A DNA stretch of 64,000 nt from Pristiophorus japonicus (Eukaryota): assembly GCF_044704955.1 (NCBI RefSeq), contig NC_091989.1:85374001-85438000 (forward strand), in the 5' to 3' direction. The notes beneath the pieces are model-generated. The model was not told the DNA's origin, searched no databases, and saw only the letters and a program-made list of their open reading frames with translations. This document shows positions 7,734 through 36,600 of the stretch, in pieces. A program made the position numbers and the translations under genes. Position 1 is the first letter of the stretch. Each line of letters begins with the position of its first letter.

Positions 7734-7758
7734 GTAGAGGTTGCACTCTGCTTTTGTC

Positions 7759-10700: not shown

Positions 10701-11619
10701 GGATGGCGCCAGACACGCTGACGTGGCGCCTAAATTCCGCCAACGTCCGCCGCGCGGCCGATGCCATCGAGTCGCTAAAGACAGCTCTGGGCCCCGACTC
10801 CGTTAGGTGTGTCGAGGAGGCTCAAGCATGTGGGGAGATCCAGTCCGAACTGACTCCCGTCCGGACGGAATTCCTCATCGGCGCCAAACCCCGGAACCTC
10901 CCTCAGGAGCCGGCGCCTCACAACTTGAGCCGCCTCGAGGAAATCCCCTTCGTGCCTTTCAGTTCCGCGCGGAGGGGTTTCCTGTACCGGCTGCTCCTGC
11001 ACACTCTCAACTTTGCCAACCTCACCTGCCGTCCGGACACGCCATGGCATACCATCTTGCCGTCCAGAGGAGAAGGGGGCTCCGATGGAGGGCACTCTAC
11101 GCGGGAGTCCTCCCAGTATTTATAGTGGACTTGGCCTGGAGGGTGGTGCACGGAGCAGTGCCATGCAATAAATTTTTACGCCAGATCACGGGCTCCCATG
11201 CCGCCTGCAATTTCTGTGGTCTGGAAGAGTCCGTGTTCCATGTTTTTATTGAATGCACGAGGTTGTAGCCCCTGTTTTATTATTTAAAGGGGCTTCTCCT
11301 GAAATTCTGGCTGCACTTCATTCCCACACACCTGATCTTTGGGCACCCTGTGCGGAGGGGAGCGGGTAGGTCCGAGGGCCTCCTCGTAGGACTGCTCCTG
11401 GGCACAGCCAAGGGTGCCATCAACCGGCCCAGGCAGCGGGCGGTCAAGGGTGTTGTTCAACCTGACTGCCTGCCTCTCTTCCGCGCGTACATCTGCACCA
11501 GGGTGTTCCTGGAGATGGAGCACGCGGTGTCCACCGGTATGCTCGCGGCCTTCCGCGAGAGGTGGGCACCAGAGGGACTGGAGTGCATCATCATGCCCGG
11601 CAACCAAATTTTAATTTAA
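7759..11619 (+). pseudogene. Tx1 ORF2 (APE endonuclease, reverse transcriptase, C-terminal CCHC), disrupted
   Basis: Endonuclease motifs: SLNING, LQETH, GVAILL, NVYAP, GGDFN, SDHH. RT motifs: GKAPGLDG, PKKGD, DQEKAFDRV, YADDV, YLGV. C-terminal CNFCGLEESVFHVFIEC. Several frameshifts, small deletions and stops. Confidence 0.93.
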
Positions 11620-14980: not shown

Positions 14981-15035
14981 ATGTTCCTGACAACTGTCGC
15001 TCAGTACGTGTGGCTGTTATTGATCATGCTTACAG
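14981..15035 (+). CDS. IgSF VJ-C1 receptor gene, exon 1 (leader peptide)
   Basis: ATG at 14981 gives hydrophobic MFLTTVAQYVWLLLIMLT. A phase-1 donor G|gtata at 15036 opens an 83-nt intron that splices in frame to the V exon. Confidence 0.8.
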
Positions 15036-15118
15036 GTATATTTTGTTTTTTTTTCTTTCATTTTCCATGCTCCACGATATGTGTCACTAGTCTTTCTATA
15101 CATATTTTTTCTTGACAG

Positions 15119-15436
15119 CTGATGCTGATGCTGTATACAAAGTATTCCAAACCCCTGAATATACGAAAGTGATCGCTGGTGTGAACATTATATTTAATTG
15201 CACATTTCGCTCTTCGAAACATAATCCAGTCGTGGATACTTATTGGTGGATACTGGGCGAAAAAACATTTCTTCAATCGGGGTCAAACAGCAGAATGAAA
15301 TGTAACTTTGACGAAGGAAAGTCGTCCCTGGAGCTTTTATCTACCAAAGTCAAGGATTCTGGGGTCTATTACTGTGGAATGACATATCAGGGAAACAGAA
15401 TGGAAAATGGCACTGGGTCCAGACTTGTTGTTCATG
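15119..15436 (+). CDS. IgSF VJ-C1 receptor gene, exon 2 (germline-joined VJ-type V domain)
   Basis: Acceptor ttttttcttgacag and donor G|gtgagt, phase 1/1. Shows B-strand Cys (FNCTF), C-strand Trp (YWW), DSGVYYC and a J-like G strand GTGSRLVV, all in one exon. Confidence 0.92.
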
Positions 15437-16145
15437 GTGAGTGCTGATTGCTGATCCCCGTGACGAATTCAAATCAATTCTACTCATCACAATCGAATTT
15501 TTAATAATATTTCAAATTATCAGTGTTAATATCCGCAGGCCGTCTCACATTAATCCATGGTAAATTCGACGGAAGAGCATCAGAAACCTGCAAAAAGTGC
15601 CGTTTTATACTATGAGACATAATTGTAGTGGATTATGTTTGTATACGTATTATCATTGTAAAGTCTGGCAGTTATATATTGCTGCATGCTGGTAAAAAAA
15701 ATTACCTGTTTAATTTGCCAGTTAACCACAGTGATATGATTTGATCTGCTTTGTTTATATTTACCCGCATAACATCATTTCAGTGAGATTTATTCAACAG
15801 TCTTACAGACGGCTTTTTAACATGAGCAAAGCACGAGAAGGAAACAAAAGACAATTCCTTAATCGCTGCTCTGTCATCCACAACAGTAATTTTTAAGTTG
15901 ACAATGTGTGTTGTTTTTTTTTGCATAGATAATTATTCTAGTTATGCATTACTTTTAAATTATTCCGTATTTGATTATGTGTTTTTTGTCCTAATTACAA
16001 AAAGACGCATTTAACGCTGTCTGTATCTACCTTGGGATGTTTAAAGTAATTCAGCATTTTAAATTTATGGAACAAAAATATAATAGTGTCCTCAATTTAA
16101 ACAACAAAGGAAGATTAAATAATTTCCGACTAACATGTTCTATAG

Positions 16146-16454
16146 CTTCCCCAGCTCCGTTATGGATTTTAACGAAAATAGCTGAAGAGAACTCATCTGC
16201 TCCGACTCTCATCTGCAAAACGACTGTGTTCTTCCCGGGGTCTCTCACCTTCACCTGGTATGAATATCACACGAACATAATGACTGAAATCAACCCCATT
16301 AAGAATCTGAATTCGGAGCGAATGTTTGAAGCTTCCACCAGTTTGGTAGCGCCACAGCCAGCCCAGAGCGGTGCTATATATACCTGTGTGGCGTTTCATG
16401 TCACACTGCAGAATCCAGCCATGGCTGTCTACATTGATGGCAAGTTTAATCCAA
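16146..16454 (+). CDS. IgSF VJ-C1 receptor gene, exon 3 (C1-set domain)
   Basis: Acceptor ttctatag and donor A|gtaaga, phase 1/1. TLICKTTVFFPGSLTFTWY fits the C1 pattern C-x4-F-(Y/F)-P-x2-(I/L)-x3-W. YTCVAFHVTL fits YxCxxxH. Confidence 0.88.
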
Positions 16455-16624
16455 GTAAGATCCTGACAATTTTACAGATACAGAGAACTGCTGCTAACAG
16501 TTACATTTATTTTTGATCATCAATGTTCGAAACAGCCATAACAATTAACTACATTTAGAAAGAGTTGTAATGGCAAAATCACTAAATTCACTCGTTTCGA
16601 TACTAGGAAGATAGAAAACACATT

Positions 16625-19146
16625 TTCTTTTGAAAGAGATGGCTATAGAGATAGTAGATGCATTGGTTGGCATCTTCCAAAATTGCATAGATTCGAGAAC
16701 GCTTCCCACAAATTGCAAGCAAATACAACTTCGCTATTTAAGAAAGGAGGGATAGAGAAAAAGGGGAAATACAGACCTGTTAGCCTGACATCAGCAATAG
16801 GGAAAATGCTCGAATGTATTGTTAAGCACGTGACAACAGGGCAATTAGAAAATAGTAATAGGATTGGGCAGAATCAACATGGAGGGTTGAAATGGAAACC
16901 AAGTTTAAGACATCTGTTAGACAACTTTTTCCTCAGCTATTGCTGGTCATCAAATATTTACAATCTGTATTAATGACTTGAATGAAGGGACCGAGTGTAA
17001 TGTAGGCAAGTTTGCTGATGATACAAGATGGGTGGGAAAGCAAATTGTGAGGAGGACACACACAATCATCAAAGGGAGAAAGACAGGCGAGTGAGTGGGC
17101 GAAATTTGGGCAGATGGACTGTAATGTTGGAAAAAGTGAGGTTATCCACTTTGGCTGAAATAATAGAAAAGCAAATTATAATTTAAATGGAGAAAAAGTG
17201 CAAAGTGCTGCAGTACAGAGAGACCTGTGGGTCCTTGTGCATGAAACAAAAAAGTTAGTATACAGGTAGAACAATAATCAGGAAGGCAAATGGAATGTTG
17301 GCATTTATTGTAAGGGGATAGAGTGTAAATGCAGAGAAGTCCTGCTAAAAGTGTACAGGTTATTGGTGAGGACACACCTGGAGTACTGCGTACAGTTTGG
17401 GTCTCCACATTTAAGGAAGGATAGACTTGCATTGGAGGCTGTTCAGAGAAGCTTCACTAGGTTTTTTTCGGAGATGAGGGGGTTGACTTGTGAGCATAGG
17501 TTGAATAGGTTGGTGCTATATATTGAGTTCAGAAGAATGAGAGGTGATCTTATTGAAACTTATAAGATAATTAGGTAGCAGGACAAGCTAGATGTGGAGA
17601 AAACATTTCCAATCATAGGCGAAACTGAAACGAGGGGACAGAGTCTTAGAATAAGTGGCCGTACATTTAAAACTGAGATGAGGAAACATTTCTTCTCACA
17701 GAGAGTTATACAACTATGGAATTCTCTGCCCTCAGGAATGTGGAGACTGGACAATTTAATACCTTTAAAGCGGAAATAGACCAATTTTTGATCGATAAGG
17801 GAGTAAATTGTTATGCAGAGCGGGCAGAAAAGTGGAGCTCAGCCTTGTTTTTCCAATGGCGCAGCAGATTTGGCGGGTGGGGGGATGGTCTACTCGTGTT
17901 CCTCTTTCTTACGTTCTTATTTTCTTATCTTTGAGGTTGTAACTAGCAAAATAAACAAGTGGGTCCAGTGAATGTAGCGCAGTTGGATTTTCAGAAAGCA
18001 TTCGATAAGCTGCCATGCAAGATGTTATTGAACAAAATTAGCGACCATTGTATTTGGGGTAATATGGATTGACAATTGCTTTCCAGACAGAAAACATAGC
18101 GTAGGAATAAAGGCCGATTTTTGGGTTGGCAGGCTGTAACTAGTGGGTTGCCACAAGGATCTGTGCTTGGACATCAGCTATTAAGAATCGATATCAATGA
18201 TTTAGATGAGGGGACTACATGTATTATTTCCAAGTTTGCTGATTATACAAAGCTAGGTGGGGATGTAAGTTGTGAGGAGGATGTAAAAAGAGTTCAAGAG
18301 GATATAGTCAGAGTAAGTTAGTGGGCAAGAACATGGCAATTAAAATATAAAATATAAAATATAAAATAAGATGTGCGAAGTTTTACACTTTGCTAGGAAA
18401 AATGGAAAAGCAGAGTATTTTTTAAGTGTTGAGATATTGGGAAATGTTGGCATTTAGAGGGACCTGGGTGTCCTTGTAGATGAAACAATGAAAGTTAACT
18501 AGCAGGTATAGCAAGCAATTAAGACATTAAATGGTATTTTATCCTTTATTACAAGAGGATCTGAGTATGCGTAAAGACATCATTCTGTAATCATATAGGG
18601 CCCCGGTGAAAACGCACCTTGAGTATTGTGTACAGTTCTGTTCTCTATATTTGCCATTGACAGAGTGCACCGAAGGTTCATCAGTCTGATTTCTGGGATG
18701 GGGTTATTGACCTCTAAGGATATATTGAGTAGACTATTCTTTAGAGTTTAGAAGAATGAGAGGTGATCTTACAGAAATATATACAATTCTTAAAGGGCTT
18801 GATTGTATAGATGAAGTGAGGATGTTTCCGCTGGCTGATGAGTCTAGAACCATGGGTCACAGTCTCAGAATAAGGGGTCAACCAACTAGGACTGAGATGA
18901 TGGGAAATATTCACTCAGAGGGTCGTGAATCCTTGGAGTTCTCTACCCCAGTGGAGGCTCAGTCTTTGACTATGTTCAAGACAGATTGGTAGAATTTCGA
19001 AGATTAAGGGAATGAGTAATATGGGGAGAGTGCAGGAAAGTGGAGTTGCGGAAGTAGACTAGCCATGATCTTATTGAATGGTCACGTGGCCGAATGGTCA
19101 CGTGGCCGAATGCCCGACTCCTGCTCCTAATTCTTATGTTCTTATG
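16625..19146 (+). mobile_element. Degenerate CR1 (16625-16930 and 17930-19146) with a second CR1 nested inside (about 16931-17928)
   Basis: Outer copy: [14 protein letters not shown], resuming with FEVVTS...PQGSVLG, tail ttcttatgttcttatg at 19146. Inner copy: LVRTHLEYCVQF and FRRMRGDLIE, tail ttcttattttcttat at about 17915-17928. Confidence 0.85.
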
Positions 19147-21116
19147 ACACTCCATCTCAAATAGAAAAATAGAAACAGAGAAACATAGAAATTTACAGCG
19201 CGGAAAGAGGCCATTTCCGCGCATCGTGTCTACGCTGGCCGACAAAGAGCTGCTGGCCCTACATCAGCTGCCGTGAAGGTTACATACAAACCCATCAACA
19301 ATAACGGAAAGGCAAAGAGCACCCAGCCCAACCAGTCCGCCCCACACCACTGCAACACCCCTTATAATAAAAACATCTACACCCCACTACAACTGGAGCA
19401 ATATGATCTCCTGGGAGAGAAAGAAAAAACACATAAAAACCCAGGCCAATTTAGGGAGAAAAAATCTGGGAAAATTCCTCTCCGACACATCGGGGCGATC
19501 GAAATTGGTCCAGGAGATCACCCTGGTCGTATTCTATTCTCTGCAGTACTCACCATTATAACTGTGCCGACCAAAAAAAGGTCATTTGGTCTAATCACAA
19601 TTACAAGCTCTAGGTACGTAACCCTGCAGGTTACGACACTTTATGTGCCCTTCCAACCATCTCTTAAAAGTGATGAAGATTTCTCCATCCAGCACTCTTC
19701 CAGGCAGCGAGTTCCAGATCCCCACAACCCTCTGTGTAAAGAAGCTCCCTTTCAAATCCCGTCTAAACCTTCCACCAACCAGCTTAAAACTATGCCCCCT
19801 CGTAATAGCCCTAACCACCATTCGAAAGAGAAGCTTAAAATCCTCTATGTCCCGGAGCCTCACTATTTTGTACACTCGATGAGGTCTCCTCTCAACCTCC
19901 TCTGTTCCAATCAGAACAAACACAGCTTATCCAATCTGTCCTCATAACTAATATTCTCTATTCCAGGCAGCAGCCTAGTAAATCTCCCCTGCACCATCTC
20001 TAGTACATTCATTTCCTTCCGATAATACAGTGACCAGAAATGCACGCAGTACTCCAGCTGTGGCCCAACCAACATATTATCCAATTTACGCATAACTTCT
20101 CTGCTCTTATATTGTATTCTTTGGCCAATAAAGACAAGCATTCCCTATGCATTCTTACCCACCTTATCCACCTGGCCTGCCACTTTCAGGGAATCTGTGG
20201 ACCAGTAGTGGAGCTTTGGAGGCATGGCCTATTCAGTTGGAGCTGTGCTGTGGTGAGAGAAGGAACTCCCTGCTGAAGCTCCTGTCTGGAAGGCCTGGAG
20301 TGAGCCCTGAGACCAGCCCAGGAAGAGGAGGAAAGGGCTGGCTTACTGCAGTTCAACATCCAGAGGGAGAGGAGGAGAGCAGAAAAATGTATCAACTTTA
20401 TTACTGCTACAAAGAGTTGGAGAGATGGGGAAAAGAACAACAACCTGTGTGGAAGGAGGGAGATTCTACAACATTCTACAGGTGGGTGTTGGTGCATTCC
20501 CCGAAAGACATTGTTTTATTGGTGGGGGGAGAAAAGAAGATTTTCTTCGAGGCCCGGAACATCGCGGGGGGTGTGTGTGTGGAAGTGGGATCTTGCTTAC
20601 AGCTAGGCCCACACACCAATGACGCACCCCTCCTCCATTGCCTAGCCTGGGATAGCTGGAGCTACCTGGCTGAAGATTTACTAATCACCCAAATAAACAT
20701 CGTTGGGAGTGTGTGCCTGGGTGGCTCCAGCTGTCCCAGGTGAAGGCATCTTCTCCTCCCACCTGAAGACCATCCCATAAGACTGTGCCTTGCTTTGTTT
20801 TCCATCATCTAGGGAGTGCGGCCCAGAAAAACACCTACCCATCGCTGTGAGGGGAGACCTGCCCTCACAGCTTCCCTCTTCCCCGCCCCTGCACTCGCTC
20901 TGTCTCTCCCTTCTCTCTCTGAGAGCTCCTTTTCTCCTTAATTGGAAAACAATTAAGACAACTGAGCAGAGGGAGCAAGGCCCCTCCCCAATTGTCAACT
21001 AGGGGAGAGGTGTGCCTCATTGAGAGCTCCTCTGCTCATAAATTCAAACAAGGCCAATTTAAGACCATTAAGGCCTGTGACTCTGGGGTGGGTGTAGCCC
21101 TTAAAGTGACCCCGTG

Positions 21117-23219
21117 ATGGCGACTCCATCCATGCCGGTGGCAGGGCCAGCTAAGACTTATGCGCAGGCGGTGTCTGCATCCACGGCACCTCCTGCGCCT
21201 TCTGCTGCCCTGCCACCATTCAGACTAATTACTAAGAAACACGGGGTCAAGGACTACACTCACCCCACAATGAGCATCAAGGAGGGCGTGCGGGCGATGG
21301 CTGGGGTAGTCGGCCCCTCGGCCATTGTCCTGGCCTCCAAGATGTCTGGGAAGGCTGTATTCTTCCTGGGGTCGGAGCGGGCAGTGTCCCTGGCCCTTGA
21401 AAAGGGGCTCACGGTGGGCGGGACGTTCCTGCTGGTGGACCCTCTCGAGGCCACCGTGCAGAGGGTCATCATTTCAAACGTCCCGCCCTTTGTTCCCACT
21501 GAGCTCCTCCTCCCTCACCTGCACCAACTGGGGGAGGTAAGGTCAGGGATCAACCCCATACCGCTCGGCCTCAGGGCGAACAGCCTGCGCCACGTCTTCT
21601 CCTTCCGCTGCCAGCTCTTTGTCCGGCTGGCGCGAGAGGAGACAACAGAGGGATAATTTAAAGTGGTGCCCGAGGGGACTGCCTACCGCGTCTTCTGGAT
21701 GTCGGATGGCGTGCGGTGCCATGCCTGTAGGGAGGTGGGGCACGTTCGCAAGAACTGCCCCGCCTCCAAAGCTGCCAAACCACCGAAGGCGGCCAAGGCT
21801 GGGGCCGCCGCCACCCCTCCCCCTAGTAGCGTCCGCGTGCCGGGAGCCGTAGGTGCGCGGGCATCGTCGGGGGCCTTTGTTTTCTCGGCCTCGGGCGGGG
21901 GGGAGGGAGAGCGTCCGATGGGGAGGAAGGCGCGGAGGAAGGCGAAACATCTCGAGGCGGGTCCCCTCAGTGCGCCAGAAATTTTGACCACCGCACTCAG
22001 CCCAACCCAGTCATCGGAGAGCGCGGGGTGCCCTGAGCCCGTGCCCGAGCCCTTGACCAATACCGCAGAGGGGCTCGGGCGCGGGCAAGATAAGAAAAAG
22101 GGGGGTGCGGAGCGGGAGGCCTCGGCAGACATGGAGGTCTCCCTGCCTCCGCGCACCCCCAGGAACAAAAGGAGGCGCCGCTCCAATGAGGCGGAGGGGG
22201 AACAACATCCTTCCACGGAGCAGTTGGTGCCCGCCGCGTGTCCCGCGTCCCCCACCAGCGCCCCCAAACTGCGCCGTAGATGGGAGGAATCTGTCCCCGG
22301 GGAGGGAGGGGCGGTCGAGGCTGCCCAGCCTCTGCCTCCCGGGGATGGCGTGGAGGATCTGCCTGTCGTGGGGGGCGTGGGGCCAGCAGAGGAATACGAT
22401 GCCGCCGGGTCGAGCGTCCCGGGGACTGAGGCGGGCGGGGCCGAAAAGGCTGAACCTGAGTCCGCCCAGCCAATATCCAACTTCCCCCGGGACTTGCTCG
22501 ACTCGGCAGAAATAAACAGTATTAACAATTTTAATGAATCTGTACACTCTGGGCAGGGGGGTGGTGGCGGGGAGGGAGAAGAACACCAACCCTCACCCCC
22601 TACTTTGGAGCTGGGGTACTTGGAGGACCTGGAACATTACTTTGACCTGGTCTCTCCGTGTTCCCCGGTTCCTGGGACGGAGGAGGAACCCCTTCCGCTG
22701 TCACTTCCTGACCCAGCACCGCTGTTAAAAGAGCCCAGTGGGGACTCCTCTGTCGACGATCCTGGGGGTGGGATCGGGGTAGAGCCAGGGTCGGATAGAG
22801 CGGTCGGGCCTTTTGCCGTACCTCGTGTGGTCCACGGGCCGGCTGCTAGCGGCGACCTCCTGGAGGGGGACGGGGACTCGGTGGAGGACGCGGGTGAAGA
22901 TCTCGAGTCCATCGCCAGTGAGGCAGTGGATCTCCTTGTGCCCGCCGCTGAGTCACCCCTCATTCCCGTAGAAGAACTCCGGGACTTTTTGGTCCAGAGC
23001 CAGGGTCGCCGCAACCGAACCCATCTGGCCCAAGAAAGATGGTCCGAGCCGGGGTTGCTCATCGCTTCCGTCCGCGTCACCGCTAAAACTATGGCCGCGG
23101 GCGGGCCCTTATCAAAGGCTCAAGGCCTTGAGCTGCGCCGGCTCAAAAAGTTTCTCGCTGGGCTGCTGAAGGAGTGGAGGTCAACAAACGACTCCACTCC
23201 ACCCCCCACAATAGGTTGG
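21117..23219 (+). pseudogene. Tx1 ORF1, copy 2
   Basis: Intact knuckle CHACREVGHVRKNC (Cx2Cx4Hx4C). One frameshift at about 21652. The position of the copy-1 stop (TAG) reads TGG here. Confidence 0.9.
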
Positions 23220-23244
23220 TTAGAGGTTGCATTATGCTTTTGTC

Positions 23245-26200
23245 ATGAAGATAACCATAGCCAGCCTCAACATCAACGGCGGCAGAGAGGCACACCGTAG
23301 ATTTAACAATTTTTCGCTCCTGCGGGAGGGGAAATATGCAGTGTGCTTCCTGCAAGAAACCCACACCGTTCCGGGAGATGAAGCCACGTGGCTCCTGGAA
23401 TGGCAAGGAGAGGTCTGCATGAGCCACCTCACCGCCACTTCTTGTGGGGTGGCCATCTTGTTGGCCCCGCATTTTCAGCTGGAGATCTTGGGGGTCGAGG
23501 AGCCCGTGCCAGGCCGCTTGCTGCATGTCACGGTTCACCTGGGAGACGTGCCACTCCATCTCATGAATGTGTACGCCCCTCAGCCTGGACCGCAGCAAAG
23601 ACGCTTCTTCGAAGAGGTGTCCGCTCTTCTTGGCTCCGTCGACGTCGGCGACTGCATTGTCCTCGGGGGGGGATTTTAACTGCACCCTCAAGGCGAGGGA
23701 CCGCTCCGGTGCCCCGCAGAGCATGATGGCGATGGAGAAGTTGAGGGACCTGGTCGGGTCCTTCGACTTGGTGGACGTCTGGCGAAATCTCCATCCCGAC
23801 CCCAGCGCCTTCACTTTGGTCCAGAGTCGACCGCCTTTACATGTCTCGGGCGTACGTTTCCTGCGTCCCGGCGGCCTCCATGCATCCGATGCCATGTTCG
23901 GACCACCACCTGGTGTGGGCGGAGCTCGCTTCGCTCCGCGCGAGGACGGGGTCCGCGTACTGGCATTTTAACAACCAGCTGCTGCGGGACGTGCGGTTCC
24001 AGGACTCGTTCCGTCATTTCTGGGCCGACTGGCGAAGGAAGAGGGGAGCTTCCTCTCCTTGAGGTTATGGTGGGATGTGGGCAAGGCTCACGTCCGCGTC
24101 TTCTGTCAAGAGTACGCGAGGGAGTTGACAAAGGGGCGGGCGGCCAAGGTCGGGCGCCTAGAAAAAGAGGTGCTCGACCTGGAGTCCCGTCTCGGTCAAG
24201 TCGTCGAGGACCCGACACTGCGGATGGTGTACGAAGTGAAGAAGGCCGCGCTGAATGACCTGCAGCTCGTCGGGTCCCGAGGCACGTTCGTGAGGTCGCG
24301 GATCCGGTTCCTGCGGGATCTGGACCGCGGTTCCCACTCCTTAAGAACTAGCGCCCGGTCTCCCTCCTCAGCACGGACTACAAAATCTTCGCCAGGGCGA
24401 TGACTGCTCGCCTTGGCGCCGTGCTGGAACACATGATCCAACCCGAAAAGTACTACACGGTCCCGGGCCGGACAATCCACGATAACATCCATCTGGTCCG
24501 GGACCTCATCCATCATTCCCAGGAGGCTGGTCCGTCGGTCGCCTTCCTATCCCTCGACCAAGAGAAGGCGTTCGACAGGGTGGATCACAACTATCTGTTC
24601 GGGACTCTGCACGCTTTCAGGTTCGGGATGCATTTCGTTGCCTGGATCCGACTTTTGTATGCCGCCGTGGAGTGTCTGATTAAGGTTAATGGGTCCTTGA
24701 TGGCGCCCGTTCGCTTTGGGAGAGGGGTGCGCCAGGGATGCCCCATGTCTGGCCAGTTATATGCCATTTGCGTGGAGCCTTTGCTGCGCCTCCTGCAGAC
24801 GAGGTTGACGGGACTGGCTCTGCAAGGGCCGGGCATGGAGGTCGTCCTCTCGGCTTACGCCGATGACGTGCTCCTCGCGGCAGAGGATCCCACTGACCTG
24901 TGGAGGATGCGTGAGTGCCAGGAGATTTACTCGGCCGCATCCTCCGCCAGGTTCAACTGGGAGAAATGTTCCGGACTCCTAGTGGGTCAGTGGCGGGTGG
25001 ACTCCCTGCCGGAGGAGCTCAGGCCTTTTGCCTGGAGCACAACCCATCTCCTCTATCTGGGAGTCTACCTTCGCCCCGACGAGGAAGCCTGGCCGCCGAA
25101 CTGGCAAGAGCTGGAGACCAAGGTCGCCGCTCGCCTAGGGCGCTGGACAGGACTGCTCCGAATGCTGTCCTACAGGGGTCGAGTGCTAGTCATAAAGCAG
25201 CTGGTGGCTGCCATGTTGTGGTACTGGCTGGTCACTTTGACCCCTCCCCCTGCGTTTGTCGCCAAGATACAGAAGAAGCTGGTGGACTTCTTCTGGAACA
25301 ACAGGAAGCACTGGGTCTCTGCCGCGGTCTTGAGTCTCCCGTTTGGGGAGGGCGGTCAGTCGTTGTTGTGCGTCAGCACACAGCTCGCGACTTTCCATCT
25401 TCAGACCCGGCAGAGATACCTTTACGTCGAACCCCTTCCTAGCTGGCGTGCTCTGGCGACGTATTTCTTCCGCCAGCAGCACGGCCTCAACTACGACACG
25501 CAGCTCCTGTTTGTGAGCTTGGGGGGCGTCAGGACCGCCTTCCAGGAGCTGCCCGTCTTTTACAAGGAACTCACCAGGGTCTGGAATAAAGTCTCCACCA
25601 AGCGCAGCTCTCCACCGGCTGGAGTGGCAGCTGTCCTGCAGGAGCCGCTGCTCGGGAATCCGTACATCCACGACCGAGGTTTCAGGTGGCGGTCGGACGA
25701 GAGGGCTGTGGCTGGTGAGGTGACCAGGGTCAGGGACCTGCTCGATGGCGGAGGAGGGGGCTGGATGGCGCCAGACACGCTGGTGCGGTGCCTAAATTCT
25801 GCCAATGTCCGCCGCGTGGCCGATGCCATCGAGTTGCTAAAAAAAACTCTGGGCCCCGATTCCATTAGCTGCATCGAGGAGGCTCAAGCACGTGGGGAGA
25901 TCCCATCCGAACTGACCCCAGTCCGGACGGAATTCCTCATCAGCACCAAACCCCGGAACCTCCCTCGGGAGCCGGTGCCTCACAACTTGAGCCGCCTCGA
26001 GGAAATCCCCTCCGTGCCTTTCAGTTCCGCGCGGAGGGGTTTCCTGTACGGGCTGCTATTGCACACTCTCAACTTTGCCATCCTCGCCTACCATCCGGAC
26101 ACTCCATGGCATACCATCTTGCCATCCGGAGGAGGCGAGGGTCCCCGATGGAGGGCACTCTACGCGGGAGTCCTCCCACTATTTATCGGGGACTTGGCCT

Positions 26201-26682
26201 GGAGGGTGGTGCACGGAGCAGTGCCGTGCAATAAATTTTTACGCCGGTTCACGGGCTCCCAGGCCGCCTGCAATTTCTGCGGTCTGGAAGAGTCCGTGTT
26301 CCATGTTTTTATCAGATGCACAAGGTTGCAGCCCCTGTTTTATTATTTAAAGTGGCTGCTCCTGAAATTCTGGCTGCACTTCAGTCCCACACTCCTGATC
26401 TTTGGGCACCCTGTGCGGAGGGGAGCGGGTATGTCTGAGGGCCTCCTCGTAGGACACCTCCTGGGCACGGCCAAGGGTGCCATCAGCCGGTCCAGGCAGC
26501 GGGCGGTCGAGGGGGTCGTTCAACCTGACAGCCTGCCTCTCTTCCGCGCGTACATCCGCGCCAGGGTGTCCTTGGAGATGGAGCACGCGGTGTCCACCGG
26601 TACGCTCGCAGCCTTCCGCGAAAGGTGGGCACCGGAGGGACTGGAGTGCATCGTCACCCCCGGCAACCAAATTTTAATTTGA
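23245..26682 (+). pseudogene. Tx1 ORF2, copy 2
   Basis: APE motifs present, with an extra G at about 23670, a 20-nt deletion at about 23820 and a deletion of about 440 nt at about 24338. After that, 760 codons are uninterrupted (24400-26682) with DQEKAFDRV, GVRQGCPMSG, YADDV, YLGV and CCHC. Confidence 0.93.
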
Positions 26683-26926
26683 TTTTATGTTTTCAGGTTT
26701 ATTTTGTTTAATTGCCGGTGTTTTTTAGTGTCCCCCTCGCCTTTTATAGGGGGCACTTGGAGGCAAAATATGATTTTAATGCCCCAAAATAACAAAAAAA
26801 ACAACAACAAAAAAAACCACAAAAAAAACAAAAAAGGGACTGGAAAATGTTTGGTGTGTCCCCCAGATCGGGGGGCCACGATTTAATGTTTTATGTTTCC
26901 TATCAAAAGAGTTCTGTGGAAACGTG

Positions 26927-27308
26927 TCCGCACGTACATCCGCGCCAGGGTTTCTTTGGAGATGGAGCATGCGGTGTCCACCGGTACGCACGCGGCCTTC
27001 CGTGAGAGGTGGGTGCCGGAGGGACTGGAGTGCATCGTTACCCCTGGCAACCAAATTTTAATTTGTTTTTATTTATTTTACAGTTTGATTTGTTTTAATT
27101 GCCAGTTTTAGTGTCCCCCCTTTTATAGGGTGCACTTGTAGAATTAATGATTTTATGGCCCCCAAATTTTTTTTTTTTAAGTTTTTAAAAATGTCAAAAA
27201 AACAAACCAAAAAAACAAAAAAAGGGCCGTTTGAAAAATGGTTGGAGTGTCCCCCAGATTGGGGGGCATTTGATTTAATGTTTATTTCGTTATCCGACCA
27301 AAAAGAGT
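26927..27308 (+). mobile_element. Tx1 copy 3, 5'-truncated (about 380 bp), in tandem behind copy 2
   Basis: Encodes the ORF2 C-terminus RTYIRARVSLEMEHAVSTG...PGNQILI plus the 3'UTR, ending AAAAGAGT. TCTGTGGAC follows at 27309-27317. Its sequence differs from the 3' end of copy 2. Confidence 0.92.
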
Positions 27309-28571
27309 TCTGTGGACAAGTGCTCCAAGGTCTCTTTGTTCATCTACGCTATTAAGTGGCCTACCACTTAATGTGTATACCATTTCCTTATTAGCCCTGC
27401 CAAAATGCATCACCTCACACTTCTCTGAATTAAATTCCATTTGCCACTGCTCTGCCCACCTGACCAGTAGATTGATATCCCGCTGCAGCTCATGACTTTC
27501 CTCTTCATCATCAACCACACAGCAAGCTTTAGTGTCGTCTGGGAACTTCTTCATCATACTTCCGATATTCAAATTTAATCGTTGATATATACCACAAAAA
27601 TCAAGGATCCAGTGCTAAGCCATGTAGAACTCCAAAGGAAATATCCTCCCAGTCACAAAAACATCCATCAATCATTACACTTTGCTTCCTACCTTCAAGC
27701 TAATTTTGGATCCAACTTGCCACTTTGCCCTGGATCCCATGGGCTTTAACGTTCATGACCATTCTACCATGCAGCACATTATCAAAAGCCTTACTAAAGT
27801 GCATGTATACTACATCGTATGCACTACCCTCATCGACCCTCTTGGTTACCTCCTAAAAAAATTAAATCAGTTTCGTCAAACAAGATCTTCCCTTAACAAA
27901 TCCGTGCTGACTGTCCCAAGTTAATCCTTGACTATCCAAATGCAGATTTATCCTGCCTTTCATGATTTTTTCCAATAATTTTCCCACAACTGACTTTAGG
28001 CTGACAGGTCTATAATTAGTTAGTCTTTCCCGTTTTCCATTCTTAAACAAGGGTACTACATTAGCAGTCCTCCAATCCTCCGGCACCATGCCCATATACA
28101 AAAAGGACAGGAACATGATGGGCAAAGCCTTTGCTATTTCCTCTTTTACTTCGCTGAACAACCTGGGATGCATTTCCTCCCGGCCTAGGAATTATCTACT
28201 GTCAAAGCTACCAAACCCTGTAATACTTCCTCTGTCACTATATTTAATTCAGCCAGAATATCACACTCCTCCTCTATAGCAATATCTGCATTACCTCTTT
28301 CCTTTGTGAAAACAGATGCAAAGTATTCGTTAAGACCCCTACAACAACTTCCACCTCCTCACAAAGATTACCCTCATGGTCTCTAATAGGCCTTACCCTT
28401 TCCTTAGTTACCCTCTTAATCGTAATATATTGATAGAATATCTTAGGTTTTTCCTTAATTATTACTGGCCAATAATTTCTCGTGCTCTCTGTTAGCATTC
28501 CTAATATCCTTTTAAATTTTACCTCTTATCTTTCTATATTCCTCTAAAGTATTCTAAAGTATATAGCCATT

Positions 28572-30063
28572 GACTCTGGATCAGTTCCTATGGAGTGGAG
28601 GGTAGCAAATGTAACCCCACTTTTTAAAAAAGGAGGGAGAGAGAAAACAGGGAATTATAGACCGGTCAGCCTGACCTCAGTAGTGGGTAAAGTGATGGAA
28701 TCAATTATTAAGGATGTCATAGCAGTGCATCTGGAAAATGGTGACATGATAGGTCCAAGTCAGCATGGATTTGTGAAAGGGAAATCATGCTTGACAAATC
28801 TTCTGGAATTTTTTGAGGATGTTTCCAGTAAAGTGGACAAGGGAGAACCAGTTGATGTGGTATATTTGGACTTTCAGAAGGCTTTCGACAAGGTCCCACA
28901 CAAGAGATTAATGTGCAAAGTTAAAGCACATGGGATTGGGGGTAGTGTGCTGACGTGGATTGAGAACTGGTTGTCAGACAGGAAGCAAAGAGTAGGAGTA
29001 AACGGGTACTTTTCAGAATGGCAGGCAGTGACTAGTGGAGTGCCGCAAGGTTCTGTGCTGGGGCCCCAGCTGTTTACATTGTACATTAATGATTTAGACG
29101 AGGGGATTAAATGCAGTATCTCCAAATTTGCGATGATACTAAGTTGGGTGGCAGTGTGAGCTGCGAGGAGGATGCTATTAGGCTGCAGAGTGACTTGGAT
29201 AGGTTAGGTGAGTGGGCAAATGCATGGCAGATGAAGTATAATGTGGATAAATGTGAGGTTATCCACTTTGGTGGTAAAAACAGAGAGACAGACTATTATC
29301 TGAATGGTGACAGATTAGGAAAAGGGAAGGTGCAACGAGACCTGGGTGTCATGGTACATCAGTCATTGAAGGTTGGCATGCAGGTACAGCAGGCGGTTAA
29401 GAAAGCAAATGGCATGTTGGCCTTCATAGCGAGGGGATTTGAATACAGGGGCAGGGAGGTGTTGCTACAGTTGTACAGGGCCTTGGTGAGGCCACACCTG
29501 GAGTATTGTGTACAGTTTTGGTCTCCTAACTTGAGGAAGGACATTCTTGCTATTGAGGGAGTGCAGCGAAGGTTCACCAGACTGATTCCCGGGATGGCGA
29601 GACTGACCTATCAAGAAAGATTGGATCAATTGGGATTGTATTCACTGGAGTTCAGAAGAATGAGAGGGGACCTCATAGAAACGTTTAAAATTCTGACGGG
29701 TTTAGACAGGTTAGATGCAGAAAGAATGTTCCCAATGTTGGGGAAGTCCAGAACCAGGGGTCACAGTCTGAGGATAAGGGGTAAGCCATTTAGGACCGAG
29801 ATGAGGAGAAACTTCTTCACCCAGAGAGTGGTGAACCTGTGGAATTCTCTACCACAGAAAGTAGTTGAGGCCAATTCACTAAATATATTCAAAAGGGAGT
29901 TAGATGAAGTCCTTACTACTCGGGGGATCAAGGGTTATGGCGAGAAAGCAGGAAGGGGGTACTGAAGTTTCATGTTCAGCCATGAACTCATTGAATGGCG
30001 GTGCAGGCTAGAAGGGCTGAATGGCCTGCTCCTGCACCTATTTTCTATGTCTATGTTTCTATG
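28572..30063 (+). mobile_element. Young 5'-truncated CR1 inserted in host 2
   Basis: RT ORF 28590-29965 is broken by only one frameshift (about 29131). Motifs [29 protein letters not shown] and FRRMRGDLIE. Tail ttctatgtctatgtttctatg. Confidence 0.93.
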
Positions 30064-32024
30064 TGACATAAGCGTCCTTTTCTTCTTAATCCTCCTCTGT
30101 AAGTCGCTAGAAATCCTGGAGGCTCTTGAATTATTTTCCCCAGCTTTTTTTTTTAAGGGCACATGTATGGCCTGAACCTTTCGGATCACCTCCATGAATG
30201 CCACCCACTCTTCCGAGTATGATTTACCCACAAGTAGCCGCTTCCAGTCCACTGTGGCCAAAACACTCCTTAACTTAATAAAATTAGCATTTCCCAATTC
30301 GGAACATTTATTCCAGGCTGATTCTTGTCCTTATCCAAAACCAATTTGAATCAGACTGAATTATGGTCACTGGCACCCAAATGCTCTCCCACTAATACCC
30401 CATCAATTTGACCAGCTTCAATCCCAAAAACTAATTCCAAGACCGCCTCCTCTCGTGTTGGGCTTGCTATCTACTAAGTAAAGAAGTTCTCGAATGGATT
30501 TCAAGAATTCCACACCCTCTATACCCTTCACACTAACTTTGGCCCAATCAATATTTCGATAGCGAAAATCCCCTATTATTACTACCTTATGCTTTTTAGA
30601 CATCAAAGCAATTTGCCTACATATTTGCTCCTCTTTCTTCCTCCCACTGTTTGGCTATCTATAATCCACTCCCAGCACTGTGATCGCCCCTTTGTTAGTA
30701 TTCAGTTCGACTCATATGGCCTGAGTTAATCATCCCTCTAACATATCATCCCTCCTCACCGCTGTAATAGTTTCTTTAATTAGTACCACAAACCCTCCCC
30801 CCTCCACCCCACACCACATTTTATCCACCTCCCAATCTTGTCCAAAAATCCTGTAGCCAGGAATATTAATCTGCCGAACAGTCATTCTTTCAGCCATGTT
30901 TCTGTAATAGCTATAATATCATACTCCCAGCTCATCGCATTATTCGCTATACTGCTTGCATTAAAGTATATACCATTCAGCACAGGAAGACCACCTTGCT
31001 TACTATATACTAAGTCCTGTTTCCTCTGTCTTACAAATAATGAATATGTTACCTAATTTGTCGTGTAATATATAATGCATGTGAGTGAGCTCATAGGAAT
31101 TCTCTATCCAATGATTTCTGCTAAATAATATAAAGTAAATTCAATACGAAGTACATATGACCCATTATTTTTTATTTTCCTTAATCCAAAAATTCAGATC
31201 ACTTCTGGTATCAACTCTTCCCTGGATCTGTTATTCCCTGTTGCAATTTCCCTGTTGGACAAAGTATTATCAGCTTGAATGCAATTTGTAATTCATTCGG
31301 AACTTTATTTGCTGCTCTAATGCTATTTAGTTATATGTCCCATCTTAGTTTATTACAACTGAAATGTAATGAAAATAAAGAATACTGGCTCTGGCAATCT
31401 GCTGGGCATTCTGAAAAGACCACCAAAACCGTCAGAAACCTGGTATAAACGGCTATTTGAGCAATTTCTCGACAGATTGCGTTGCCAACCTTCCAAGCTA
31501 GGACAGGAAACTTGGCAAACTGCTGCTGAATTAAAGTGCCAGTGTTAAATATATCAAGTGGCAAATTAATCGTGGTTCTGATGAGTGCAAATAAAAAATA
31601 CACTGGTTTTTTGATCGAACAATGATTGAATGGATGACTCAAACTTTGGGCCTGAGGTATTTTCTTTTTGCAACATTTTGATAATAAACCAGTGCGGTCT
31701 GTTGTGCAATCCTCCAAGTAGCCATAAAATGACATCGCTTCTGATAAATGCTACACTTTTCCAAGAGTCAGACCGTTTGATAAGAACGCATTTAAAATTG
31801 ATTTCTTAAGGTTGATCTCAAACAAATTATGAAACATTGCTGAAATGATTTTATTTGCAATATTGATGAAATCTTAATTTCATTACTGGATGACATTTTT
31901 GCACAAAATTAATTGTTTTATATTGTGAGAAGATTTATTTTTTGTTAATTTATTTTTCTAGAGTTGAGTGCGATGCTGGAAATGTCATATTTACTGAGCT
32001 TTCCTTGTTTCTCTGAGAAAGTAC

Positions 32025-32755
32025 AGGCCGAAATTCCCTTGTTCTGCATCTCTCATTAGCACCTCTAGGGGCGCTAACTGGCAGGAAACTATTTTCGGCG
32101 GGGTGCAAACGACTCCCACAAAATTGTATTAGAATTAGGTGAGGCAGAGGTGCGAAATTGGCAGCAGCGCACTCTGATATTACTGCCCTGGGTTCCATGG
32201 CGGAACTTAGCCAGCACCCCTCGACAGGCAATGTCAGCAACAGCTACGCGAATCTTGAATGGGGCCGACCTTCGATTGTGGAGCAGAAGTTAAAGGAGAC
32301 ATGCAATGTAGGTCCTACTGCCATTATTTTTCTTCGGGAGACACATCGGTCGTTTCATTCCAGTTTGCTGCCGCGTAGACTGGGCCTCCATCATGCAGTC
32401 CCTGCACTCCGTCTCAGTGCAGGGCTGTGGCCATGTCTACACGCAACCTTGGTAGCCCAGTGGAGGTCTTGAAATGGCCATGTAGAGGTTTAGCATCCCT
32501 CTACTTTAACGGAATGGGAAGGGAATTGAAAGCATAAGTGATACTTGTAGAATCCAAGTAGCACTATCGAAGCCACCTGAGTAACATCCCTGAACCTTTC
32601 CAAAAGGGAATTGGAGCACGCAACTTGTGCTCCACTTCCTGTGAGGCGAATTAACCACTTTCGTGTGGCCGAGCCAGACTTCCCCCATGGGCGCAGGAAG
32701 TCCCGCCTCACCATGGTTACCGCCCCCAAATCGGGTGGAACCTAATTTTACCCCC
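32025..32755. repeat. Probable non-autonomous interspersed repeat
   Basis: A relatively GC-rich block in an AT-rich intron, bounded by imperfect inverted ends (ggccgaaatt ... aattttaccc). No coding signal. Confidence 0.3.
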
Positions 32756-33449
32756 TAAATATGTCACACGGCATTAACTTACCTATCATGATGACTGAAA
32801 TAAAACATAACAGGAGATCCATAGCAGTATATAACATTTGGTTTTGATCAGTAACATATTACACTTAATACGTAGAGAATTAGAAAGATTAAATCGGGAT
32901 GTTATGGTTTAGCACCACAGTTAACCGGATAGCTAATAACATTCCCCTTTGGTGATATTGAAGCACAGAGAAAATAAAAATGAAATGGGATGGGTTTTGC
33001 CAGAGAAAGCGCATTCGCAGATGTTCTATAGTGCGCTAACATGCCATACGTTTAAAGACCAACTCAGTTTTGGAATTAAACAAACCTGTTATTGCACACA
33101 GTATATCAATCAATGGCATATTAGCGCATGCAAACCAAATTCATACTAATTGCAGTGACTATATTTCCACTCGATCAACTATTTATAATCAACTAGCAGG
33201 CACTGGTGAAAAAGTTGTTTGGTTCCTGCCTCGATTAGGATATTTGAAGAAAAGCATAATGAGATTTAACAATGGTTCCAAAATGCTAATATTTATTTCC
33301 CATAGTATGTTGTTGTTCTCATATCATTACATATGCAAAGTAGGAACGAAATATTATATTTTGCCGCTTCTTTATTTGTGTCATTTATTGAGTAATGTTA
33401 CAAAATAATACTCCTTATAGCACAAAATCCATAATTTTGTATATTGCAG

Positions 33450-33568
33450 GTTCCAATTACAGACTTCGCGATGCTTTGATCTGCAGGTTGATATTTGGTT
33501 TCTTAATAGTTCTGTTGCTATCTTTCCTTGTTGCCGACCATTTTATGGCTCACCTCCATTGCAGGTAA
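33450..33568 (+). CDS. IgSF VJ-C1 receptor gene, exon 4 (transmembrane segment with Arg, short tail)
   Basis: Acceptor aattttgtatattgcag, phase 1 and compatible with exon 3. Translates (S)SNYRLRDALICRLIFGFLIVLLLSFLVADHFMAHLHCR*. A donor CAG|gtaaag at 33565 overlaps the in-frame TAA at 33566-33568. Linkage across the 17 kb intron is inferred. Confidence 0.72.
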
Positions 33569-33640
33569 AGCATTATTTATTGTTTCAAACGATCAATAGT
33601 CCTATTTTTAAGTATTAATTCGAACATTGGCGGTACATTG

Positions 33641-36600
33641 TGCCAAAAATTGCAGTCTCTACCAGTGTGTACGATACACATGCATCTTACCCGTCACTTG
33701 CAATCATTGAGGTTTTGACAGATCGTAAGCATCCACGGGAGAAGCGTGTTTACGTGTTGAGATTTTTGCTATTTGCCCAACTCTTGCCCAGCGAATGTCC
33801 TGCTTTTATCAGTGTAAGAGTTTTACTGGATACAAAAATAAATGTTATAAACGATTTTTATATGAAAACCCCTGCCTATGAAGATACGTTTGTTTTTAAT
33901 GCGATTAAAATAATTTTAACGTAATATTCCAAAAAATATTTTCACTAAAAAATTTAATTTAATGCAATTTCTTTCACTTTTTTATGTGAAGTGTTTTTTT
34001 AATTTATATTTTTGTGTTGTTTAACTTTAGTGGTAATCCTATTCATCATAATGGGAGACCGGTGCTCATATTAGTCTACATAAGAATATAAGAATTAGGA
34101 ACAGGAGTAGGCCATCTAGCCCCTCGAGCGTGCTCCACCATTCAACAATGTCATGGCTGATCTGGCCGTGGACTCAGCTCCACTTACCCGCCCACTCCCC
34201 GTAACCCTTAATTCCCTTATTGGTTAAAAATCTATCTATCTGTGACTTGAATACATTCAATTAGCTAGCCTCAACTGCTTCCTTGGGCAGAGAATTCCAC
34301 AGATTCACAACCCTCTGAGAGAAGAAATTCCTACTCAACTCGGTTTTAAATTGGTTCCCCCGTATTTTGAGGCTGTGCCCCCTAGTTCTAGTCTCCGCGA
34401 CCAGTGGAAACAACCTCTCTGCTTCTATCTTGTCTCTCCCTTTCATTATTTTAAATGTTTCTATAAGATCACCCCTCATCCTTCTGAACTCCAACGAGTA
34501 AAGACCCAGTCTACTCAATCTATCATCATAAGGTACCCCTCTCATCTCCGGAATCAGCCTCGTGAATCGTCTCTGTACCCCCTCCAAAGCTAGTATATCC
34601 TTCCTTAAGAAAGGTGACCAAAACTGCACGCAGTACTCCAGGTGCGGCCTCGCCAATACCCTGTACAGTGGCAGAAGGACCTCCCTGCTTTTGTACTCCA
34701 TCCCTCTCGCAATGAAGGCCAACATTCCTTCGCCTTCCTGATTACCTGCTGCACCTGCAAACTAAGTTTTTGGGATTCATGCACAAGGACCCCCAGGTCC
34801 CTCTGCACCGCAGCAAGTTGTAATTTCTCCCCATTCAAATGACATTCCCTTTTACTGTTTTTTTCCCCAAGGTGGATGACCTCACACTTTCCGACATTGC
34901 ATTCCATCTGCCAAACCTTAGCACATTCGCTTAACCTATCTAAACCTCTTTGCAGCCTGTCTGTGTCCTCTACAAAACCCGCTTTCCCACTAATCTTAGT
35001 GTCATCCGCAAATTTTGTTATACTACACTCTGTCCCCACTTCCAGGTCATCTATGCATATTGTAAACAGTTGTGGTCCCAGCACCGATCCCTGTAGCAAA
35101 CCACTAACCACCGATTTCCAACTCGAAAAGGACCCATTTAACCCGATTCTCTGGTTTCTGTTCATCAGCCAATTCTCTATCCATGCTAATACATTTCCAC
35201 TGACTACGCATAGTTTTATCTTCTGCAGTAACCTTTTGTGTGGCACCTTATCGAATGCCTTTTGAAAATCTAAATACACCACATCCATCGGTACATCTCT
35301 ATCCACCATGCTCGTTATATGCTCAAAGAATTCCAGTAAATTAGTTAAACATGATTTTCCCTTCATGAATCCATGCTGCGTCTGCTTGATTGCACTATTC
35401 CTATCTAGATGTCCCGCTATTTCTTCCTTAATGATAGTTTCAAGCATTTTACTCACTACAGTTGTTAAACTAAGCTGCCTTTTGTCTGCCCCCTTTTTTA
35501 AACAGAGGCATTACATTAGCTGCTTTCCAATCCGCTGGTACCTCCCCAGAGTCCAGACAATTTTGGTACATTATAACGAATGCATCTGCTATAACTTCCG
35601 CCATCTCTTTTAATACCCTGGGATGCATTTAATCGGTACCAGGGGATTTGTCTACCTTGAGTCCCATTAACCTGTCCAGCACTACCCCCCTAGTGATAGT
35701 GATTGTCTCAAGGTCCTCCTTTCCCACATTCCTGCGACCAGCAATTTTTGGCATGGTTTTTGTGTCTTCCACTGTGAAGACCGAAGCAAAATAATTGTTT
35801 AAGGTCTCAACCATTTCTACATTTCCCATTATCAAATCCCCCTTCTCATCTTCTCAGGGACCAACATTTACTTTAGTCACTCTTTTCCGTTTTATATATC
35901 TGTAAAAGCTTTTACTATCCATTTTTATGTTTTGCGCAAGTTTACCTTCGTAATCTATCTTTCCTTTCTTTATTGCTTTCTTCGTCATTCTTTGCTGTCC
36001 TTTAAAATTTCCCAATCTTCTATTTTTCCACTAACCTTGGCCACCTTATACTCATGGTTTTTTAATTTGATACTTTCCTTTATTTCCTTGGTTATCCCCG
36101 GCTGGTTATCCCTTCTCTTAAGGCCATTCTTTTTCACTGGAATATATTTTTGTTGAGCACTATGAAAGAGCTCCTTGAAAGTCCTCCAGTTTTCCTCAAT
36201 TGTGCCACCATTTAGTCTGTGCAAACAGTCTACTTTTGCCAACTCTGCCCTCATCCCACTGTAGTCCCCTTTGTTTAAGCATAGTACGCTCGTTTGAGAC
36301 ACTACTTCCTCATCCTCAATCTGTATTACAAATTCAACCATACTGTGATCACTCATTCCGAGAGGATCTTTTACTAGGAGATCGTTTATTATTCCTGTCT
36401 CATTACACAGGACCAGATCTAAGATAGCTTGCTCCCTTGTAGGTTCTGTAACGTACTGTTCAAAGAAACAATCGCATATACATTCTATGAATTTCTCCTC
36501 CAGGCTACCCCGTGCAATTCTATACGAGGCTGCTACATTGTGATTGGTGGTCTAGGCCAAAGTGATCCCAGGTTATTGCATACACTCCTGGAATAAGTGG

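Follow-up and report, generated by a model that had tools for sequence, protein, structure and literature searches.

Elasmobranchs carry non-rearranging genes related to immunoglobulins (Ig), UrIg and UrIg2, in which a split leader and a single-exon VJ precede C domains numbering 3 to 11; the liver produces UrIg as a secreted protein (PMC12227049). We analyzed a stretch of 64,000 nucleotides from the sawshark Pristiophorus japonicus (NCBI RefSeq assembly GCF_044704955.1, contig NC_091989.1, positions 85,374,001 to 85,438,000 of the forward strand), hereafter the window. An initial annotation of this stretch, made from the sequence, had predicted a non-rearranging receptor gene composed of a leader, a V domain with a germline J-like strand, one C1-set domain, and a transmembrane (TM) segment. 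Like UrIg and UrIg2, this gene has a non-rearranging single-exon VJ, a split leader, and a C1 domain. However, it encodes a single C1 domain followed by a TM segment with an arginine, instead of three or more C1 domains, and its similarity to UrIg2 is weak when domains are taken separately (best single domain E 0.083). The SIRP receptors also combine a V domain bearing a J-like strand with the C1-set, and their family includes both forms with immunoreceptor tyrosine-based inhibitory motifs (ITIM) and forms with a basic TM residue, which in the beta forms pairs with DAP12, but they have a V and two C1 domains, whereas the sawshark gene and its orthologue have one C1 only. In NKp30 (NCR3), a single VJ domain directly precedes the stalk and TM segment without any C1, unlike the sawshark gene with its C1 exon. 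The PRARP genes, represented in chicken by PRARP1/2, have a V-C1-TM organization. PRARP (Fu et al. 2019, J Immunol 202:1992, cited in PMC10751288) may be related to the gene. As the best overall explanation of our observations, the locus likely corresponds to an intact gene of a large VJ-C1-TM family and encodes an activating-type receptor of a paired system.

A Four-Exon Gene with an Orthologue in Heptranchias

The gene, with intron 3 swollen by long interspersed nuclear element (LINE) retrotransposons, is organized as follows (a slash marks the exon boundary):

14981-15035, + strand, leader exon: starts with ATG, 18 codons and 1 nt, phase-1 donor G/GTATAT; first half of the split leader
15036-15118, + strand, intron 1: 83 bp, GT...AG, strong polypyrimidine tract; a short leader intron as in Ig and T-cell receptor (TCR) V genes
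15119-15436, + strand, V exon, which includes its own J strand, YYCGMTYQGNRMENGTGSRLVV: acceptor ttcttgacAG/, 105 full codons, donor CATG/GTGAGT
16146-16454, + strand, C1-set domain exon: acceptor ctatAG/, 102 full codons, donor CCAA/GTAAGA
16455-33449, + strand, intron 3: 16,995 bp, containing the LINE copies
33450-33568, + strand, stalk, TM, and short cytoplasmic exon, SNYRLRDALICRLIFGFLIVLLLSFLVADHFMAHLHCR then TAA: acceptor attgcAG/, 38 codons and the stop
33837-33842, + strand, AATAAA: possible polyadenylation signal read from the sequence, about 270 nt past the stop

All exon junctions are of the GT-AG type and in phase 1, and the six splice sites, read directly in the raw sequence, are good. 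The codons of the four exons (18+1+105+1+102+1+38) add up to a protein of 266 amino acids in a frame open throughout, as initially predicted. The V exon matches the Pfam V-set domain (38.3 bits for a cut-off of 26, E 1.7e-9) and carries two N-glycosylation sites, NCT and NGT; the C1 exon matches the C1-set domain (29.2 bits for a cut-off of 21, E 1.2e-6). With both domains above their cut-offs and the same layout in the orthologue described below, the predicted architecture of leader, germline VJ, one C1, and TM segment is upheld. The product would be a type I membrane glycoprotein in which a signal peptide precedes a germline VJ domain and one C1 domain, and a short stalk leads to a single TM helix.

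The C1 exon was scanned against 1.84 billion representative proteins. This retrieved a V-C1 protein family whose members are about 230-380 amino acids long, and in which follow-up look-ups identified P0184 as the nearest whole protein. P0184 is isoform X1 of a Heptranchias perlo gene (XP_067853486.1, 268 amino acids, database name "immunoglobulin lambda-1 light chain-like"), and P0181 is its isoform X2 (XP_067853487.1). The exons were searched and aligned one at a time, P0184 serving as a stand-in for the whole protein. The V exon is 62.5% identical to P0181 and P0184 (E 2.6e-42), the C1 exon 62.7% identical to P0184 (E 4.7e-42), and the TM exon shares 28 of its 38 residues (74%; tblastn E 1.7e-15) with the P0184 tail, which ends in FKPGSDYRLRAALISRLIFGLLIILLLAFLVVDHFKASLFCRFV. 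The three exons match P0184 in the same order. Since the C1 domain of P0184 runs directly into its TM tail, no exon is missing from the four-exon model. The 74% identity also attaches the TM exon, although it lies 17 kb downstream, to this gene; the concern that it might belong to another gene is thereby answered in the negative. The leader exon matches the N-terminus of P0184 in length, and 8 of its 18 residues agree when compared by eye; BLASTP with the leader peptide alone, a very short piece, gave no match.

Quick maximum-likelihood trees were built from family members only. In the V tree, the sawshark sequence is sister to P0184 with a Shimodaira-Hasegawa-like approximate likelihood ratio test (SH-aLRT) support of 95. 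In the C1 tree, the two group together (SH-aLRT 86) inside a clade with a support of 96. The proteins have the same exon-level layout, nearly the same length (266 and 268 amino acids), the same TM segment with an arginine and an Asp-His pair, and a short tail. They differ at their ends, CR in the sawshark and CRFV in Heptranchias, and before the TM arginine, where Heptranchias has a serine and the sawshark a cysteine. From these alignments and trees, we identify the gene as the counterpart of XP_067853486.1, being either its orthologue or a paralogue very close to it. The first reading of the locus had assigned no ortholog; P0184 can now be given this place, with identities of 63% (V), 63% (C1), and 74% (TM exon).

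No second V or C1 exon was found in the 64-kb window by tblastn with the exons and a motif scan, and no nearer TM exon, second Ig exon, or ITIM exon was found in intron 3 or downstream. Weak matches to the tail at 11.2 kb and 26.3 kb were rejected as exons because both lie inside LINE copies. A search of the window against Rfam gave no match. The TAA of the TM exon overlaps a donor-like CAG/GTAAAG (33560-33570, + strand). As P0184 ends two residues later (CRFV), an extra splice to a fifth coding exon or a shifted stop is conceivable. We interpret the four exons as a real, correctly modelled, non-rearranging gene of a squalomorph shark.

The V and J Segments Are Joined in the Germline

The J-like strand GTGSRLVV closes the V exon in frame and directly abuts the splice donor, so that no joining step is needed. 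This agrees with the germline-joined J strand initially described. Rearranging Ig and TCR genes have recombination signal sequences (RSS) and separate (D)J segments; here, V and J are contiguous and the donor comes next. The reported absence of an RSS was also confirmed, as no heptamer-nonamer pair adjoins the V exon. The sole CACAGTG nearby (15727-15733, + strand) lies 290 bp into intron 2 and is followed, 23 bp on, by a nonamer-like stretch matching at only 5 of 9 positions. RSS heptamers occur 11 times in the window for 7.1 +/- 2.4 expected by chance. This motif was rejected as an RSS, being inside intron 2 and without a nonamer, in a window with a chance-level heptamer count.

A Large VJ-C1-TM Family in Sharks, Rays, and Chimaeras

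Members of the family were confirmed in 16 species, and every named relative is chondrichthyan, in line with the cartilaginous-fish origin predicted from the letters of the sequence. Species were assigned from source look-ups of 30 representatives and two word searches; many matches of the C1 scan carried no named source. The family is present in sharks (Heptranchias, Heterodontus, Mustelus, two Scyliorhinus, Carcharodon, Hemiscyllium, two Chiloscyllium, and Stegostoma), in rays and skates (Pristis, Leucoraja, Amblyraja, Mobula, and Hemitrygon), and in the chimaera Callorhinchus. The V and C1 sets contain 100 or more distinct predicted proteins, and single genomes hold many copies. The names given automatically by NCBI to these proteins are SIRP-alpha-like, SIRP-beta-like, tapasin-related-like, Ig lambda-1-like, NCR3LG1-like, MHC class II beta-like, and CD276-like; the family has thereby received at least six contradictory names. 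No paper describing the family was found in the literature collection that was searched.

The sawshark gene has the features common to these genes: a split leader, a VJ exon with two tryptophans (WW) after the first cysteine and the motif (N)GTGxxLxV (NGTGSRLVV in the sawshark), and a single phase-1 C1 exon that opens with P-x-P-L (SPAPL in the sawshark, PPTPL in most members). In an alignment of 24 members with the exons of the window, 16 columns are near-invariant, and all 16 are kept in the sawshark gene, including both disulphide pairs and both tryptophans. Together with its position in the trees and a TM exon of the R...(D/E)(H/Y) type, these features place the gene within a large VJ-C1-TM family of non-rearranging receptors in sharks, rays, and chimaeras.

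Compared with the wider family, the sawshark gene belongs to a short-tailed subclade, the P0003/P0184 group, and no ITIM exons are detectable in the window. The C1 clade with a support of 96 also holds the P0003 group, short-tailed proteins conserved across sharks and batoids. Because Heptranchias has both the P0184 and the P0003 kinds, these two lineages are old paralogues. The kind found in the sawshark was identified only in Heptranchias and the sawshark itself, both squalomorph sharks. The description of the gene as a poorly characterised innate receptor shaped like a TCR or Ig light (IgL) chain proved appropriate; its implied rarity, as a lone relic, was overstated for a multigene family with inhibitory, plain, and arginine-TM forms.

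Tail Classes Suggest a Paired-Receptor System

The TM helix of the sawshark protein has an arginine near its outer end and an Asp-His pair at its inner end. It is followed by a tail of about ten residues, with no tyrosine after the membrane segment. Three classes of tails were distinguished in the family. Thirty-three distinct tails combine a plain TM segment with tyrosine motifs similar to ITIMs or to immunoreceptor tyrosine-based switch motifs (ITSM), 35 have a plain TM segment without such a motif, and 10 have a TM segment that carries an arginine near its start and ends with (D/E)(H/Y), the tail being short in nearly all of them. The arginine-type TM exon is present in eight species, chimaera included, and is recognisably the same across lineages: the sawshark exon and that of Mustelus P0190 are 45% identical over 33 amino acids (E 1e-7).

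The C1 tree requires at least eight changes of the arginine-TM state, and arginine-TM proteins often have as neighbor an ITIM form whose ectodomain or C1 domain is almost the same. The ectodomains of P0183 and P0182 are near-identical in Callorhinchus milii, as are the C1 domains of P0009 and P0016 in Heptranchias perlo; in both cases, one protein has an ITIM tail and the other an arginine TM segment with a short tail. Each pair could stem from a single gene with alternative exons or from two genes that became paired very recently. Arginine-TM and ITIM tails scattered side by side over the tree are the signature of paired receptors.

SIRP-alpha/beta, KIR, NKp30, and TCR are established analogues for the pairing of a basic TM residue with an adaptor. 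By analogy, we propose that the family works as paired receptors, in which members with ITIM or ITSM tails would inhibit. Arginine-TM members such as the sawshark protein, whose tail contains no tyrosine, would not signal alone. Their membrane arginine would recruit an adaptor with an acidic TM residue and an ITAM (immunoreceptor tyrosine-based activation motif), of the DAP12, FcR-gamma, or CD3-zeta class, leading to activation. We infer that the sawshark protein is an activating member of such a paired-receptor system.

A Working or a Decaying Copy

Several observations weigh against the interpretation of the locus as an intact gene for an activating receptor. The adaptor pairing is inferred by analogy only, with SIRP-beta, KIR-S, NKp30, and TCR, and the conserved Asp-His pair on the inner side of this helix is not known to have a role. 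The context of the start codon is weak, with a C at -3. Word searches of protein collections, with the 159-amino-acid open reading frame (ORF) around the C1 exon and with the orthologue, returned no product of the sawshark gene, which therefore seems unannotated. Furthermore, of the 26 C1 columns conserved in at least 75% of the members, 8 differ from the consensus in its sequence (K39E, G47E, G58R, L59M, Y60F, S64T, V82A, and S83F), compared with 1 of 26 in P0184. This makes it the most deviant of 97 family C1 domains, the other 96 having at most 7 departures and a median of 3. Its branch in the C1 tree is 2.5 times longer than that of the orthologue (0.43 vs. 0.17). This divergence of the C1 domain could reflect relaxed constraint.

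The gene might then be a silent or decaying copy, with a frame still open but no longer selected or expressed in the sawshark. The deviant C1 domain and its long branch, the lack of a product in collections where the Heptranchias orthologue is present, and the 17-kb intron filled with LINEs before the TM exon are all in favor of this explanation. On the other hand, 266 codons are open across four exons bordered by six good splice sites, and all 16 near-invariant positions of the family, with both disulphide pairs and both tryptophans, have been retained. In addition, the V exon departs at only 3 of 25 conserved columns, no more than the average, which confines the acceleration, as judged from these columns, to the C1 domain. 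Conservative substitutions (L to M, Y to F, S to T, V to A, and K to E) account for five of the eight changes in C1. We consider a silent copy unlikely, though it is the most serious competitor, and a working gene fairly probable on this sequence evidence.

A Candidate Alternative Last Exon without a TM Segment

Isoform X2 of the Heptranchias gene (P0181) has a hydrophilic tail in place of the TM tail. A possible counterpart was found downstream of the sawshark gene:

45697-45779, + strand, candidate alternative last exon encoding a TM-less tail, NFLSNKATDMDDWLCRNTEGTMRFVCT followed by a stop; good phase-1 acceptor, ttttctatcttttgtAG/

This tail is 43% identical to the non-TM tail of isoform X2 (E 2e-4), and 3 of 300 shuffled tails reached its tblastn score. 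The codon split by the intron fits in both species (G+AT, Asp, in Heptranchias; A+AT, Asn, in the sawshark). As a lead only, these matches hint at the production of membrane and TM-less forms in both sharks. The alternative last exon may give a TM-less, probably secreted, product.

Relationship with Ig, TCR, UrIg, and SIRP

Among solved structures, the C1 exon matches best UrIg2 (9dmx), followed by IgM, TAPBPR, lambda chains, and MHC class II beta, and the V exon matches best shark VNAR and TCR alpha. P0184 searched against the sequences of the PDB has UrIg2 as its best match, then lambda light chains. A profile of the family matches UrIg2 (E 3e-39), SIRP-alpha (2wng; E 2.3e-30), and light chains (E near 1e-26). 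The long match with the highest score in the C1 scan, a "titin-like" protein of Carcharodon, is UrIg2-like. The AlphaFold2 model of P0184 (mean predicted local distance difference test score 89.8) consists of two domains folded as beta-sandwiches and a single long helix that spans residues 229-267; its closest structural matches are light chains of antigen-binding fragments (Fab), with about 21-24% identity. Domains of Ig, TCR, and UrIg2 are in each case only about 21-25% identical, and single domains score below 30 bits. As all matches to known families lie at this level of identity, none marks membership.

With TCR and IgL chains, the sawshark gene shares the V(J)-C1 shape and, through the model of its orthologue, a fold similar to that of a Fab light chain; the basic TM residue and the very short tail are as in TCR chains. 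It differs from them by the germline V-J join, without RSS or separate J, and by the replacement of the F/W of the FGXG motif by a glycosylated asparagine (NGTG), a change that should alter the canonical V-V interface. A germline-joined shark IgL does not account for the gene either: identity is low, and a TM exon is present and conserved.

A more ambitious proposal is that the short-tailed subclade (the sawshark protein, P0184, and the P0003 group) represents the nearest membrane-bound non-rearranging relative of Ig light and TCR chains. It would produce, by alternative last exons, a membrane form, whose TCR-like basic TM residue assembles with an acidic-TM signaling module, and a secreted form. 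We regard this proposal as doubtful. If true, a germline-encoded receptor would already show two traits of antigen receptors, the duality of membrane and secreted forms and the logic of their assembly.

Even less probable is that the gene is a unique surviving relic of the precursor of antigen receptors that preceded RAG, closer to TCR and Ig than other non-rearranging genes. Its VJ-C1-TM layout, its split leader, and a basic TM residue as in a TCR chain are what such a relic might show; so are the Fab-light-chain fold of the orthologue and its best matches among solved structures, UrIg2 and lambda light chains rather than SIRP. Yet a family of at least 100 distinct proteins, with many copies per genome, is not unique, and the low identity and single-domain scores reported above indicate no special nearness to Ig, TCR, or UrIg2. 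We therefore consider this reading very unlikely.

Finally, true SIRP orthology, as suggested by some of the automatic names, is the least credible reading: although SIRP-alpha and SIRP-beta likewise pair ITIM and basic-TM forms with a V bearing a J-like strand before C1, and the family profile does match SIRP-alpha, the gene has one C1 domain and not two, UrIg2 obtains a better score than SIRP-alpha with this profile and Ig light chains a comparable one, no SIRP appears in the best 60 PDB sequences for P0184 nor with either single exon, and the database names of the family are contradictory. The label "SIRP-like" is thus not to be read as SIRP orthology, P0184 being nearer, by these comparisons, to UrIg2 and lambda light chains.

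LINE Elements in and around the Gene

Two regions of intron 3 hold ORFs that match reverse transcriptases:

23227-26682, LINE ORFs: reverse transcriptase (RVT_1); zf-RVT and endonuclease matches weak, below the Pfam cut-offs
28590-29159, second reverse transcriptase ORF: reverse transcriptase match

The LINE copies of intron 3 are GC-rich. A further GC-rich LINE with a reverse transcriptase ORF lies upstream of the gene, at about 4000-12000. No family-like exon was found within intron 3. In Heterodontus francisci, about 130 N-terminal residues of P0027 (XP_067905015.1) match the LINE reverse transcriptase of the window, and this RefSeq model is probably a family member fused to a transposon fragment.

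Significance of the Family

As a single locus, the sawshark gene is ordinary; the family as a whole merits a proper description. To this family, the gene adds an arginine-TM member whose orthologue was found only in another squalomorph, a possible pair of membrane and TM-less last exons common to both species, and a case of fast C1 change. The family dates back at least to the ancestor of sharks and chimaeras. In addition to UrIg and UrIg2, sharks thus carry an entire family of VJ-C1-TM receptors, and non-rearranging VJ-C1 genes bear on the origin of Ig and TCR.

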